A stretch of 64,000 nucleotides of DNA from Blastocladiella emersonii ATCC 22665 (GCA_025594325.1 JANHCV010000009.1:744001-808000), one strand, 5' to 3'; counted from the stretch's first letter, positions 18,864 through 24,493 are shown. Program-made: numbers and translations. The notes: a model not told the origin generated them from the letters alone.

Positions 18864-19895
18864 TTAGGCCTTCTTGGCGAGACCCTCGATGTCGGCGATG
18901 CACTGGTTGACGAGATCGGCTTGCTACAAACACGGAACAGCGATGGGGAAGTGAGTGACCGATCAACCCGAGCACACCGACAAGCAGCAAAAGACGTACG
19001 ATCTTGGGGTCGGCGAGGGCGGCGTTGAGGCGGGCGAGCACCTTCTCGGCGAGCTCCTTCTGCTGGCGCTCGCGGACCGAGGTCTCGTGGCGGACCCAGG
19101 CGTCGAGGGTGCCCTTGATCTCGGCCACGTAGGCGGTGCGCTGCTTGAGCTCGTACGCCTCGGCCTCGAGGGCGGCCATGGACTTGGACATGGCGAACAG
19201 CGACTTGGTGATGTCGACGACGTCGGCCATCTCGGCGACCGAGTCGATCTTCTCGGCGACGGCGGCCTTGTGGTCGGCGCGCGCCTGGGTGAGGATGTTC
19301 ATGATGTTCGAGATGCGGCCCTCAGACCACTGCACGATGGGCTCCTTCATGCCGCGGTACAGCAGCGTGGCGATGCCGAGGAACGACGCCAGGATGAGCG
19401 TCTCCTCGTTGAACACGTAGATCTCCTTGGAGATGGCGAAGGCCGCGGCGCCCGTGCCGAGGGTCACGATGCCGGTCTTGGACACGATGTTGTTGCCGGG
19501 GAGGGCATCGATCACGCTCTTGGCCTTCTGGGCGGGCTCGGGGCGGGTCTCTGTTCGAGGCGGGAGGGTCGGCGGTCAGCTCATGGACCCGTGCGGAGCG
19601 CGCAGAGAGTAGCGACACGAACCCGACGAGTACTGGCTGGAGGCGGAACCACAAAGTCAACGCAAGGTACGGGCATGCGTTCGGTTTGCGGCGATCACCG
19701 CGATAACCGAGCACGAGCGAGCGCGAACGAAAAGTATACACGAAGAGGACAGCGAGCAGTCCGTCAGCCTTGTGCGCAGTGCCACCAGTCGCAGGGCGCC
19801 CGGACGTACCGGGAGGCCAGGGCGACGCGGGGCACGGGGGCCATGGCGCGGAGGCCGGCGGCGGCGCGGGTGGCGGCGGCGAGACGGAGGGCCAT
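18864..19895 (-). CDS. ATP4: Mitochondrial ATP synthase subunit b (subunit 4)
   Basis: Arg/Ala-rich presequence MALRLAAATRAAAGLRAM..., then IDALPGNNIVSKTG, ISKEIYVFNEET, LDAWVRHETSVRERQQKELA. Includes a 14-nt exon at 19623-19636; the last exon ends EGLAKKA-TAA at 18864. Confidence 0.92.
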
Positions 19896-20227
19896 GGTGG
19901 AAGCGGGGGCGGATGCGCGAAGTGGCGGACGTTGCGTGCAGCGGGCCAGGCGAGCGAGATGAGGGTCGGGGGCCGGGGCGTGTGCGGCGCGACGACGGCG
20001 GCCGGCGGCGGCAACGGCAGCGGCCGCGAGGCGAGAGCGGCGGCAGGGAAAATCTCGTCAAACAAGCATCACGTGGCGTCACCCTTCTCCTCAAAACTTG
20101 ATTTGACCTTCGCGAATATCATCTCATAATCGTCCCTCCCCTCTCAGAACTCGATGCAATGGAACCGCGGATACAGAATACCGTATACTATCGCCTTCGA
20201 TCCACCAAAACTCCTCCCTACACCACC

Positions 20228-20597
20228 TCAGAACCCGCCGCGCGTTCCACCCCGGGCCGCAGCCCCGCGCCCGCCACGGAACCCGCCGCGTCCACGTCCA
20301 CCACGGCCACCACGGCCTCCAAACTCGGCGGCGGCCGCGACCGCGGGCGCGTCGGTGCGGTCGTACGGGTGGAACCCGTGGTTGGCGGGCGGCGCGATGG
20401 ATGGTGGGGCGGCCGCGGGCGGGGCGGGGGCGTTGGCGGCGGCAGCAGCCTGGAAGCCGGCGGCGCCGAGCGTGCTCATGAGCTGCGCGAGCTGCTGCGG
20501 GTTGCTGTTGCTGGCGAGCTGCGACAGGCCGAACGGGTCGGCGGCGGGTGCTGGCGGCGGCACGAGCTGCGGCTGCTGCTGGGCCTGCGCGACTTGT

Positions 20598-20630
<33 letters not shown>

Positions 20631-23031
20631 AGGGTAGCGCTAGATAGGGGGCCGCGGAAGGTTGTGAGCGGAGGATGCTTCGGGAGTGAGACGACGACGA
20701 GAACGTACGCGGCGAGCGTGTTGAAGAGCCCGGGATTCACGGCCCTAGACGCGCCCGCGCGAGGTCGCTTCGTGTCAGTTTTCGCTGCTCGTGTCGATTC
20801 ACGCAGTCGCGCATGCGCACGTACAGGAGATTCAGCAGCTGCGCGGTGGTTTGAGGATTGGCCTGCCCGAACGCGCCGAGGACGCCTGCGGCTGCGGCGG
20901 CGGGGAGCGCGGTCACGGCCGGCGGCGGGGCCTCGAACGACCGCACGAAGGCCTTGAGCGTCGCGTCCTTGATGTTGGCCGATGGGAGGTTGCCGTCGGG
21001 CTACACGATTCGAGAGGAGGAGCGGAAACGACGCGAGGAAGCACACCAGCGGGGAGGTTAGACAGTAGATCGAGCAAAAAAAATCGAGTTTTCCATTGAC
21101 GACGACGGCCACGCTCTCCACCTCCACCTCCTCCAACTCCTCCACCCATCCACCAGCTCGCTCCATCCAACCTGAGCCGAGCTCGCCGTGGTCCGGCGCC
21201 AGTCCCACGCGCGCGAGTGACGCGGGGAGGGCAGCCTGAACCGAGTCCGGGTCCGAGTTCGAGATCGAGAGAGCAAGTGTGTGAAGTGCTGGAAACGAGT
21301 CAAAGCGACCACCACCACCCAGTCCGCCACGACAGAAAGAACGAGAGAAAACACGTACAATAGTCGCCCTGCGCCGCGCCTCGTACCCGGGGACCGACTC
21401 GAACACGCCGGGCGCACACTCGCGGGGCATACTCGGGGACGGCGGCACCTCGGCCTCGGACGTGTAGTTGATAGCGACGGGCGGCGCGCTACGGCGGTCG
21501 AGCGCGAACGTCCCGCGCTCCATGGCCGCCACGGGCCACGGGACGGGCGCGCGCCAGTCGATCGAGGGGTCGAGCTTCTCGCGGGCGAACGCGACACGGC
21601 CCTCGAGCTTGTCGAAGTCGCGCGCCGACCGGCCCGCCGCGCCCGCCGCGTGCGGGTGGTGCATCTCGGCCTCGGGGTCGACCTCGACCGTGAACTCCTT
21701 GACGGCGCACAGCTCGCCGCGCCCGGCCTCGTCGCGCCACCGGATGTTCCCGCGCGACTCGCGCCGCAGCTCGGGCCGGCGCAGGATCCCCGTCGACCGC
21801 GCGCGCGGCGCCGCCGTGCGCCGCGTGATCCCGGACGTCGTCGCGGTCGCCACCACGGGCGTCGCCGTCGTCGTCGATGCGTCCGATCCCGCGGATGTCG
21901 GCGACGCCACGCCCGACGCGCGGTCGCTGTCGGCCGCGGGCGCGGCCGTGTCCACGGGACTCGGGGCCGCCGAAGCAACGGCGGCCGCGGGTTTCGCGGC
22001 CGGGACAAACGGCGCCGCGGGGCGAGCCGCCGCGACCGGCGCGGCGGGGCGGGCGGCCGAGATGGACGTGGTCTCGACGAGCTGCGACAGGATATTGGTG
22101 GGCGAGGGGTTGGGCGTGGTGGGTTTGGTGATGCGCTCCTTGCGGAGGAGCGGGCGGCGACCGTTCGTGGTCGCGTTCCCGTTGGTCATGGCGGGGGACC
22201 CGTTGGCCGACGACGACGGGGTCGACGCAGACGTCGAGCTGGCGCCCGAACCAGCGCTCGAGCCGCCGGCCGAGGGCACGTACTGGGCGGCCATGGCGGA
22301 CCACTTGGCCATGAGGTTGTCGGCGGCCGCGGCCACGTCCGGGTGGTCCGCGTACTCTTTCGGCAGGCGCCGGAGCCCCTTGATGACGTTGGGCGGCATT
22401 TTCGGGAGGTGCGCGGCCGTGATGGGCAGCACGGCGAGCGTCGAGAGGAAGTCGCGCGCAAAGGCCGCGTCGCGCTCGCGGAGGCACCGCACCATCCAGT
22501 TGCCCAGGAGCATGGGCGCGCTCTGCTGCCCGATCCAGCTGGTGGTTCCGATCGATCGGGGGACGGGCGTGAGTTAGTTTTCGGATCGGTGAGTCGATGA
22601 AGCGAATCGGGGGAGCCGTACTTGTGCAGCACGTCGGGGCGCGACCGGCGCAGCATGGCGAGGAACTTGAGCTTCTCGGGTTTGCTGCGGTCGCCCTTCT
22701 CGGCGTAGAGCCACTCGGTAAAGTCCTTGGCCGAGATGGCCTCGACGCCCGCGAACCCGCCCGTGCTGGGGTCCGTGCGCGCCGTGAGGTGGTCTGGAGT
22801 TGGTGAACGGCGACGCGGCGACGGTGAAGCAGCAGCAGCAACGACGGCGCGCGGATGATCCGGAGACAGTCGGCGATACGGGTGCGTGCGGCGGAGGACA
22901 CGTTGAGGCGGAGGCGAGGGCGTGTCCGAGTGACGACAGCCGGGTTCAGCGGCAGCGGTGACGCGGACGGCGGCGGGCGGGGTGCGGCGCGGGGAGGAGA
23001 AATAGGGCAGCTCGATGGTTAGTTTCCACAT
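20228..23031 (-). CDS. PNUTS/Ppn1/Ref2-like PP1 regulatory module (TFIIS-N-like domain, RVxW-type motif, polyQ, RGG tail); probably the 3' part of a gene starting at 24493
   Basis: TFIIS-N-like segment LLGNWMVRCL...LSTLAVLPIT...ADNLMAKW; PP1-binding-like RGNIRWRDEAGRGELCAVKEF, then RDFDKLEGRVAF...IDWRAPVP; C-terminal GGRGGRGGRGRGGFRGG. Introns include 21001-21358 (358 nt). Confidence 0.72.
20600..20630 (-). repeat. (CAG)10 microsatellite encoding a polyQ tract in the PNUTS-like gene
   Basis: Plus strand (ctg)10 at 20600-20629 reads QQQQQQQQQQ in the last exon. Confidence 0.9.
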
Positions 23032-23116
23032 GTTTGAGGGGGGAGTCGGTGGTGGTGCGGGATCAGCGACGCGATCACACACGGAGAGCGAGCGGGTCGT
23101 GGGGGGACGCGTGGCG

Positions 23117-23124
23117 CTTTTATA
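23117..23124 (-). promoter_or_regulatory. TATA-like element (TATAAAAG) with three adjacent ACGCGT boxes
   Basis: TATAAAAG on minus about 85 nt upstream of ATG 23031; ACGCGT at 23107-23112, 23132-23137 and 23146-23151. Confidence 0.4.
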
Positions 23125-23236
23125 CTCTTGGACGCGTCGCAGCGTACGCGTTCGCGTCGTGCTGAGCCGCGTCCATGTTGACCGTCATCTCGTATGGATC
23201 CAAGGGAGGTAGGGAAAGAGGTAGGAAAGCGCGTAC

Positions 23237-24493
23237 CCTTGGTCTGCTGAGTCGCCGCCGGCGGCTGGGCGGCGGGAGCGCGGGCGACGGACACGGGCGC
23301 TGGCGTCGGAGCAGCAGCTGCGGGCGCAGGCGCAGGAGCCGGAGCTACGGGTGTCGGTGCCGGGGTCGGTGCGGGTGCGGGTGCGGGCGCGGGCGCGACC
23401 GTCTCCTTGTTCATGATCTTGAGGGGCGGCGGCAGCGAGGCGGCCACGGGGTCCCTGGGCGGGAGCGGGACGCGCTCGCCGGGCGTCTTCAGGGCGCGGC
23501 GGCGCGTGAACCACGAGGACATCTGCAGGTGCGGGAGCGGGGTGTGTGGGAAGGCGGAGGGACGTGGGAGTGTGAGCAAACATCCGATTTGAGGGTGGCC
23601 AGGAAGGTGGGGAACAAGAAGCAGAAGCAACCGACCTGGTACTCGAGAATGTCGCCGAGCTCCTCGCACCACGCCTTGATCTGGGCATTCGTCGGGTGGT
23701 TGAAGTCGCAGAACTTGTTCTCGAGCCACGCCTTGTCGTAGGCGGAGAAGGTCTTGCGCTTGCTGCGGAGCGGAGCGCGCTTGCCTGCAAGCGGATCGGA
23801 GTGCAAGTTGGTTAGCCATCATCAGCTTCTGCGCGCGTGGATGGACTTTCGAGTTCAAGTTTGAGCTCGAGAGTCAGAGGAGAGTAGAGTAGACGTACGC
23901 TTGGCGGCGGGCGCGCGGCCGCTGGACCGAGTCTTCATGCGCGACGAGCTGCTGCTGCTGTCGTCGCTCTCCTCCTCGTCGCCCTCCTCGTCGTCGTCGT
24001 CGTCATTCTCACTGCTCGCCACGTCGACGGCGGCCTCGGACGCGGTGCGCTTGACGGGGGCGCGGCGCGTGCCGACGCTGGCCATGGGCCCGCTCGGCGC
24101 GGCGGCTGGAGCAACGAGAGGCGCAGCAGCGGTAACGGCGGCGGCGGCGACGGTGGTGGTGGTGTTGTAGTAGTTGAGGTACGACGAGTAGGCGGCGGCG
24201 GCGGCGTAGGCGGGCATGAGCGGGTTGACGGGGACCATGCCGGGCGCAGGAGCAAACGACGAGGGGCCGATGGTGACGGGGGCGGCGGTGGGGCCGAACG
24301 GGTTGGCGCCGGCAAAGGGCGAGGGCAGGAGGGGCGAGGACGAGGACGAGGCGAGCAGGAAGCCGGACTGCGTCAGCCCGTGCACCTGCGGCGGGAAGAG
24401 CGGCACGACGGCAGTTTGCATACCGGAGGTGGCCGTGGCGGCGGCCGAGGCCGAGGCCGAAGCCGCGGTGGTTGAAGCGGGGTCGGCGGACAT
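23237..24493 (-). CDS. Atypical homeodomain-coding exons; no own stop before the PNUTS-like module
   Basis: ATG at 24493, Ala/Pro-rich N-terminus. Introns 23785-23898 and 23523-23635 yield RSKRKTFSAYDKAWLENKFCDFNHPTNAQIKAWCEELGDILEYQMSSWFTRRRALK. A strong GTACGC donor follows at 23236. Confidence 0.72.

Follow-up and report, generated by a model that had tools for sequence, protein, structure and literature searches.

Introduction

The LUMINIDEPENDENS protein (LD) of Arabidopsis was recognised in 2024 as the Ref2/PNUTS-like subunit of the APRF1-TOPP4 module (PMC7616277). S. pombe Ppn1 (C74.02c) and S. cerevisiae Ref2 are subunits of the CPF/DPS phosphatase module, and a role in termination has been described for this family (PMC7616277, PMC13710762), whose members serve animals, yeasts and plants as the scaffold that connects the phosphatase PP1 with the machinery of transcription termination. 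The LD class was reported to be restricted to land plants and to have arisen after the Chlorophyta/Streptophyta split (PMC2775110), and the LD homeodomain has so far been treated as a land-plant peculiarity. Here, we analyse a gene in a 64,000-nucleotide stretch of the genome of the blastoclad Blastocladiella emersonii ATCC 22665 (JANHCV010000009.1:744001-808000; hereafter the window). This gene, located on the minus strand at 24493..20228, probably encodes a PP1 scaffold of the PNUTS/Ppn1/Ref2/LUMINIDEPENDENS family that carries an atypical homeodomain at its N-terminus. An LD-like layout exists in early-diverging fungi too, and with the B. emersonii protein the PNUTS/LD family gains a new member from fungi. 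The literature that we searched on this theme contained no description of a homeodomain-PNUTS protein in fungi.

Gene model and the 443-nt intron

Using canonical splice sites, we built a gene model of eight exons with a coding sequence of 3006 nt, which starts with the ATG at 24493, ends with the stop codon at 20228 and encodes 1001 amino acids (aa) without internal stops. All positions refer to the minus strand of the window. An earlier note on this DNA had proposed that the exons encoding a homeodomain are spliced from a GTACGC donor at 23236 across a C/T-rich 443-nt intron to a CAG acceptor at 22794, yielding one gene. Both splice sites were found as described: exon 3 ends with ...CAG ACC AAG G at 23237 in phase 1, the acceptor reads ...CTCCAG, and the joined codon G|AC encodes Asp and continues in frame (QQTK-DHLTARTD). 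The intron consists of 43% C and 19% T. A second long intron listed in the same note (21358..21001; 358 nt, GTACGT...TAG) is present, as are the downstream features it had named, i.e., NIRW at residues 665-668 followed by ...LCAVKEF, a polyglutamine (polyQ) tract at residues 868-890 and an RGG tail at residues 972-1001 of the 1001-aa model.

In a protein search, the sole match of the C-terminal open reading frame (ORF) was GenBank H9P43_007221 (P0001; 1019 aa, "hypothetical protein"), with 100% identity. P0001 is a single protein across both parts, and its junction 23236/22794 is identical to the one proposed earlier. Since the GenBank annotation was generated ab initio with funannotate, and RNA evidence is not named in PMC9730499, the shared junction represents agreement and not independent experimental proof.

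Coding statistics point to the same structure. The GC content at third codon positions (GC3) ranges from 0.82 to 0.96 in the exons and is 0.90 overall. Codon periodicity is absent in all frames of 23236..22794, where the frame reading through the donor has a GC3 of 0.52, and the coding signal is back exactly at 22793 (GC3 0.95). The conserved block encoded by exon 4 is not preceded by an ATG within coding-like sequence and therefore needs an upstream exon.

To obtain orthologues, we ran phmmer exhaustively with the TFIIS-N region as the query, which gave 10 matches. Four of these were TPR-repeat false positives and were rejected; four other blastoclad species had relatives, namely Allomyces javanicus, Sorochytrium milnesiophthora, Blastocladiella britannica, and Coelomomyces lativittatus. 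One stop-free ORF of Allomyces (L001:4430-4963) encodes the complete homeodomain together with the first 60-odd residues of the domain that follows, and the protein (P0002) has its homeodomain at residues 263-317 and its TFIIS-N region from residue 341. The Sorochytrium protein (P0005) shows the same order, with the homeodomain and the TFIIS-N domain joined through short introns, and has a C-terminal CCCH finger. Thus, the homeodomain lies N-terminal to TFIIS-N in one polypeptide in the B. emersonii model and in both orthologues. The column of the 443-nt intron in the alignment is that of a 66-nt Sorochytrium intron, and Allomyces has no intron there. Coding statistics and orthologues together support the one-gene claim of the earlier note, and from the sequence it is very likely that the homeodomain and TFIIS-N parts belong to a single gene.

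Some features of the 443-nt intron can be read differently. The intron is four to five times as long as the short introns of the gene and contains, within 23019-23130, an ATG at 23031 that is in frame with exon 4 via 80 stop-free codons and a TATAAAAG-like string upstream of this ATG. If there were two genes, a short homeodomain protein would end at a TAA near 23019, a separate PNUTS-like gene would start at ATG 23031 or be driven by a promoter within 23236..22794, and the single model would be a prediction artefact. That no RNA run was listed and that the B. britannica model has no homeodomain would be compatible with this arrangement, which we nevertheless regard as highly improbable. The frame from ATG 23031 has a codon-position GC of 0.72/0.70/0.64 and shows no sign of translation, its GC3 of 0.64 without periodicity standing against 0.90 in the exons. 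The two ORFs would overlap, leaving no space for a terminator and a promoter. In addition, the acceptor marks exactly where the conserved block starts, the Allomyces sequence with which this block aligns shares one ORF with the homeodomain, and Sorochytrium has an intron at the matching alignment column. By our own estimate, an 80-codon stop-free run arises by chance in ~5-10% of cases at this base composition.

The same features of the intron (the ATG, the TATAAAAG-like string and the length) would also fit a single gene with an internal promoter in intron 3, from which a homeodomain-less PNUTS-like isoform would be made alongside the full-length form. In animals and Dikarya, relatives as a rule lack the homeodomain (PMC7990198), and the B. 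britannica protein begins ~100 residues before TFIIS-N, behind a T-rich upstream region. However, the sequence offers no positive sign of such a promoter, the extension is not coding-like, and the next in-frame Met falls within the conserved domain, which makes coexistence of both forms unlikely, if less so than two separate genes. The preferred reading remains one gene in which the 443-nt intron is spliced out. After an ACTAAC box at 23023, the 217 nt that lead up to the acceptor are free of AG; box and tail fit a distant branch point. As proof of such a branch point the AG-free tail is not decisive, as the same strand of the window has three AG-free runs that are longer.

The homeodomain

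The spliced homeodomain matched positions 1-53 of the 57 positions of the Pfam Homeodomain family (PF00046) with an E-value of 8e-5 and 22.8 bits. A profile built from the three orthologues matched 172 chains in the PDB over positions 6-63; the top 60 were all homeodomains (best E 6e-7), so that the homeodomain proposed in the earlier note is a full-length match to the family. Helix 3 reads W-F-T-R-R-R, in which Trp48, Phe49, and Arg53 are kept and the near-invariant Asn51 is replaced by Arg. Position 51 is likewise Arg in Allomyces and is Thr in Sorochytrium. Because Asn51 is missing, sequence-specific DNA binding is doubtful. Judged by these comparisons, the homeodomain is real but atypical.

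P0001 differs from our model within this domain. Its intron-2 donor lies later than the GTCGGT at 23635, which results in 18 extra residues (VGCFCFLFPTFLATLKSD) between helices 2 and 3. A Pfam scan of P0001, in which this insert is present, reported no domain; the 18-residue insert thus hides the homeodomain from Pfam, whereas the corrected splice gives the E-value of 8e-5. Splicing from the GTCGGT donor at 23635, unlike the GenBank splice, yields a homeodomain that is collinear with those of Allomyces and Sorochytrium. Together with the identical length of the Sorochytrium exon (149 nt), this alignment favours the donor at 23635, and the public model appears to need one splice correction within the homeodomain.

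The TFIIS-N domain

In a single-sequence search of the PDB, the top four matches of the TFIIS-N region were the four entries of the PNUTS N-terminal domain (E 0.002-0.013). A profile of six blastoclad sequences searched against the PDB matched PNUTS with an E-value of 2e-10 over positions 11-141. Med26 (E 6.6e-6, positions 85-141), TFIIS (E 1.5e-3, positions 77-141), IWS1 (E ~5e-3, positions 43-139), and Elongin A (E ~5e-3, positions 62-141) gave weaker matches. An AlphaFold2 model of P0001 residues 358-505 had a mean predicted local distance difference test score (pLDDT) of 92.6. Using this model, Foldseek placed vertebrate PNUTS on ranks 1-7 among the Swiss-Prot models, with a template-modelling score (TM) of 0.75 and a root-mean-square deviation (rmsd) of 2.2 Å over 141 residues. 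Arabidopsis LD was found on rank 8 (TM 0.62, residues 194-312) and S. pombe Ppn1 on rank 10, and among PDB entries the four structures of the PNUTS TFIIS N-terminal domain (TND) came out on top with TM 0.71-0.78. Since PNUTS leads by profile as well as by fold, we assign the domain to the extended PNUTS type and not to the generic Med26/TFIIS module, in line with the PNUTS-family TFIIS-N-like domain that the earlier note had claimed. As a lead only, fold clusters of the AlphaFold DB include unnamed proteins in which the domain lies 140-500 residues from the N-terminus.

A separate observation came from an Atlas fold match to a mainly chlorophyte cluster of 179 proteins that contain SAND (74%) and Med26/TFIIS-N domains, the representative of which has a TM of 0.76. 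If this cluster is real, the DNA-binding domain that green algae combine with a PNUTS-like TFIIS-N would be a different one.

The C-terminal module with putative PP1 and WDR82 boxes

An alignment of six blastoclad sequences from five species showed 22-33% identity overall and a sharply conserved C-terminal module (C-module). The first half of this module consists of G-I-L-(K/R)-(K/R)-P, basic residues, (I/V)-x-W-x-D, and G..(D/E)-L-C-A-(V/I)-(K/R)-E-F, in this order, and the second half of A-R-A-L-E..E-G-R..F-G-R-E-K, E-P-x-I-x-W-x-x-P, and R-G..S-x-E.

The putative PP1-docking box (21790-21692; residues 651-683) comprises GILRRP, a basic patch, N-I-R-W, 8 residues and L-C-A-V-K-E-F. The residues W, D, G, L, and F of this box do not vary among the six sequences, and the Coelomomyces equivalent reads KKKSVKW. 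In Ppn1, binding of Dis2/PP1 needs a basic patch, V508-x-W510 and D515-L516, and the PP1 site of PNUTS consists of RKRKTVTW and then a Leu (PMC7990198). The earlier note had described an RVxW-like motif extending to VKEF. Of this claim, the I-x-W pattern is present, being invariant in blastoclads and in the register of PNUTS TVTW and Ppn1 VSW, but it is a pattern only (E 0.31 in the alignment considered below). VKEF is instead part of the conserved block after the docking Leu; we also considered it as a second RVxF site and rejected this, as V-K-E-F does not fit V-x-F.

The putative WDR82-binding box (21568-21497; residues 725-748) reads I-D-W-R-A-P-V-P-W-P-V, then E-R-G, and its P, R, and G are invariant in blastoclads. 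The WDR82-binding region (WBR) of Ppn1 opens with EIIWYKPVPIKF, known as the "WPL/I" motif, after which RGYKC lies over the pore of the propeller (PMC13710762). Taking the Ppn1 sequence from chain C of structure 9SCD (IIWYKPVPIKF...RGYKC), IDWRAPVPWPV...ERG aligned with IIWYKPVPIKF...PRGYKC in the expected register, with a weak score (hhalign E 0.02, 23 columns). The distance between Trp668 and Trp729 is 61 residues, compared with 58 between Trp510 and Trp568 of Ppn1. In the B. emersonii protein, we identified neither the LI-like motif nor the charged helix of the Ppn1 WBR. A CCCH finger ends the Sorochytrium orthologue, and zf-CCCH also occurs in Atlas clusters of animal PPP1R10; downstream of the B. 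emersonii stop codon we looked for such a finger and found it absent.

Proposed function and the weight of the evidence

From the conserved short motifs, the I-x-W box, with basic residues ahead of it and D/E-L behind it, would dock the PP1 catalytic subunit in the RVxF groove, and the I-x-W-x-x-P...RG box would wrap the WDR82/Swd2 propeller. The PNUTS-type fold suggests that TIM-type motifs of elongation factors may be the ligands of the TFIIS-N domain, and the RGG tail may bind RNA. In this way, PP1 would be brought to elongating RNA polymerase II, where it would dephosphorylate Spt5 and the CTD and so promote termination. The homeodomain, lacking Asn51, perhaps does not read a specific DNA sequence and may serve the module as an upstream tether to chromatin, DNA or protein.

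Several observations weigh against a PP1 scaffold encoded by one gene. A look-up of RNA sequencing runs listed none, and we infer the splicing of the 443-nt intron; at this column, Sorochytrium has a phase-0 intron and B. emersonii a phase-1 intron. Two relatives, the B. britannica and Coelomomyces models, have no homeodomain. By Pfam, the homeodomains of the three species score 22.8, 18.5, and 21.3 bits against a gathering cut-off of 22.9, the B. emersonii domain falling just under it, and the Med26 score is also below the cut-off (13 vs 20.6 bits). NIRWRD was placed on the PNUTS TVTWPE peptide, which was taken from structure 4MOY, in the expected register but without significance (hhalign E 0.31, 6 columns). 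The B. emersonii residue before Ile is Asn and not Lys/Arg, with no basic residue at -1/-2, and the spacing from Trp to Leu is 8-9 residues here and 6 in the known motif. Finally, hmmsearch with the C-module profile found no match in the PDB, and the C-module as a single sequence had no match in the PDB or Pfam.

The two weak motif alignments (E 0.31 and 0.02) and the unmatched C-module would be expected if the protein were an ordinary homeodomain transcription factor with a generic TFIIS-N/Med26/IWS1/Set2 module, the boxes being conserved for some other reason; Set2 and IWS1 are also among the fold matches. We give this explanation little credence. The E-value of PNUTS is ahead of the other TND families by four orders, and the match covers ~130 vs ~55 residues, with TM 0.75-0.78 for PNUTS vs 0.5-0.64 for the others. 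The order of the boxes and their Trp-Trp spacing match Ppn1. Animal PNUTS carries an RGG tract, and the Sorochytrium CCCH finger and the B. emersonii RGG tract are found as at the end of the animal protein. The exhaustive phmmer search with the TFIIS-N region revealed no second PNUTS-type protein of B. emersonii. On balance, a PP1 scaffold with an N-terminal atypical homeodomain is the probable identity of the protein.

Orthologues, intron positions and synteny in blastoclads

Of the seven B. emersonii introns, five match Sorochytrium introns in column and phase, two of them within one to three columns. The matches include both introns that bound the homeodomain exon. Sorochytrium has 14 introns (L002:3001-6849), B. 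emersonii seven and Allomyces five; three positions are common to all three species, one of them two columns off in Allomyces. These counts and shared positions suggest intron loss in GC-rich lineages.

On the same strand downstream of the B. emersonii gene (~19300-19960) lies the gene for mitochondrial ATP synthase subunit b (ATP4). The downstream neighbour of the Sorochytrium orthologue is also ATP4, in the same orientation (L002:7127-8269), and since neighbour and orientation match, the gene pair represents conserved microsynteny across blastoclad genera.

For B. britannica and Coelomomyces, six-frame searches with tblastn and hidden Markov models found no homeodomain upstream of the genes in the 251-1106 nt that extend to the contig ends. 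As the genes start so close to these ends, either homeodomain loss or a homeodomain-less form is possible in these species. The B. britannica relative (MU624971.1, L003:1-700) has 677 aa, is 28% identical to the B. emersonii protein and has its own Ser/acidic N-terminus. Its gene is preceded by a T-rich region, with no homeodomain in the 298 nt upstream, and is followed downstream by a neighbour other than ATP4. This relative may be either a paralogue or a form without the homeodomain.

Word-indexed protein searches with the ORF of the C-terminal half, the TFIIS-N region and the Sorochytrium C-module found only the query itself; such searches miss relatives because these are too diverged to share 5-residue words. 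A metagenome scan with the orthologue alignment found nothing. A further scan gave a single metagenome locus, which had no other match to any orthologue and was judged to be a bacterial false positive.

Exon-intron structure

The seven introns (114, 113, 443, 83, 358, 80, and 69 nt) all have GT...AG borders, and six of the seven begin with GTACG. Exon 1 (24493-23899; 595 nt, GC3 0.90, ending in phase 1) is identical to the start of P0001 and encodes the low-complexity N-terminus, an acidic/Ser tract and the first part of the basic run that precedes the homeodomain. It is followed by intron 1 (23898-23785; 114 nt, GTACGT...CAG), which has the branch box GCTAAC 27 nt before its end and a Sorochytrium counterpart of the same phase one column off. 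Exon 2 (23784-23636; 149 nt) encodes homeodomain helices 1-2 and on its own matched positions 1-37 of the Pfam Homeodomain with an E-value of 0.04. Intron 2 (23635-23523; 113 nt, GTCGGT...CAG) lies within the homeodomain, in the same column and phase 0 as in Sorochytrium. Helix 3 (SSWFTRRRA, with Asn51 changed to Arg) and then an Ala/Pro-rich linker are encoded by exon 3 (23522-23237; 286 nt, ending in phase 1). The features of intron 3 (23236-22794; 443 nt, GTACGC...CAG) are described above.

Exon 4 (22793-22622; 172 nt), with a GC3 of 0.96 from its first codon, encodes the first helices of the PNUTS-type TFIIS-N. Intron 4 (22621-22539; 83 nt, GTACGG...CAG) contains ACTAAC 35 nt before its end and is shared by all three species in both column and phase (2). 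The first part of exon 5 (22538-22283) encodes the remaining TFIIS-N domain, which together with exon 4 spans residues 344-486. The remainder (22282-21359) encodes a disordered Ser/Thr/Ala/Pro-rich linker and the conserved C-module including both putative boxes. In intron 5 (21358-21001; 358 nt, GTACGT...TAG), TCTAAC is found 57 nt before the end; column and phase (0) are those of a Sorochytrium intron, and the Allomyces intron is two columns off. Exons 6-8 (21000-20825, 20744-20709, and 20639-20228), which are separated by introns of 80 and 69 nt, encode a conserved IK(D/N)..K.F block, the polyQ tract, the RGG tail and the stop.

Discussion

The order of homeodomain and TFIIS-N was seen in Blastocladiella, Allomyces, and Sorochytrium, and the layout is thus not peculiar to B. 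emersonii but is found in at least three blastoclad genera. As a lead only, an Atlas cluster of 68 proteins, mostly from Mucoromycota, contains Homeodomain in 82% and Med26 in 72% of its members, and the homeodomain-PNUTS layout is probably present in Mucoromycota as well. One scenario, which we consider possible but rather doubtful, is an old fusion that predates the split of the fungal and plant lineages, was kept in Blastocladiomycota, Mucoromycota, and streptophytes, and was lost in animals, Dikarya, and green algae. If this were true, PNUTS-PP1 termination modules would originally have been tethered through an Asn51-less homeodomain. The blastoclad layout would mean either that the fusion is far older than thought or that degenerate homeodomains were repeatedly acquired by a termination-phosphatase scaffold. 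Under either origin, the homeodomain is likely no relic but functions within the module, and blastoclads, being genetically simpler, would be suitable for finding out what is tethered by it.

Compared with the known systems, the B. emersonii protein shares with S. pombe Ppn1 the TFIIS-like domain, found on rank 10 by fold, and its putative PP1 box resembles the combination of a basic patch, V-x-W, and D/E-L through which Ppn1 binds Dis2 (PMC7990198). Ppn1's WPL/I motif and RG half-helix, with which it binds Swd2.2/WDR82 (PMC13710762), also have their putative likeness here, at near-equal spacing from V-x-W. In contrast, the N-terminal 172 residues of Ppn1 are disordered, poorly conserved and have no homeodomain (PMC7990198).

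Animal PNUTS (PPP1R10) is the best match for the TFIIS-N domain by both profile (2e-10) and fold (rmsd 2.2-2.4 Å, ~141 residues). Further likenesses are the putative V/I-x-W docking site in the register of the TVTW in 4MOY, the Gly/Arg-rich tail, and the CCCH finger of the Sorochytrium orthologue, whereas B. emersonii itself has no such finger. The PNUTS TFIIS-N starts at residue 15, and PNUTS therefore has no homeodomain. The PP1 box of B. emersonii also differs in having Asn, not Lys/Thr, before Ile, and two or three extra residues before Leu.

With Arabidopsis LD (Q38796), which was compared through its fold rank, Atlas scores and published description, we saw no sign in B. emersonii of the LD1-LD5 blocks or the FLD/SDG26 partners. 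The B. emersonii TFIIS-N is nearer to animal PNUTS than to LD, and, going by the published description of the LD homeodomain, Trp48 is kept in B. emersonii and is Phe in LD. Atlas feature scores to the plant LD cluster were 0.74-0.81, and this cluster was the first named match for the Allomyces segment comprising homeodomain and TND (0.81), which we take as a lead only. Asn51 is absent from both homeodomains (W48F and N51X in LD, PMC2775110; N51R here), and LD resembles the B. emersonii protein in its overall layout, in which an atypical homeodomain is followed by TFIIS-N and then by a long disordered region with partner-binding motifs, which in B. emersonii are putative.

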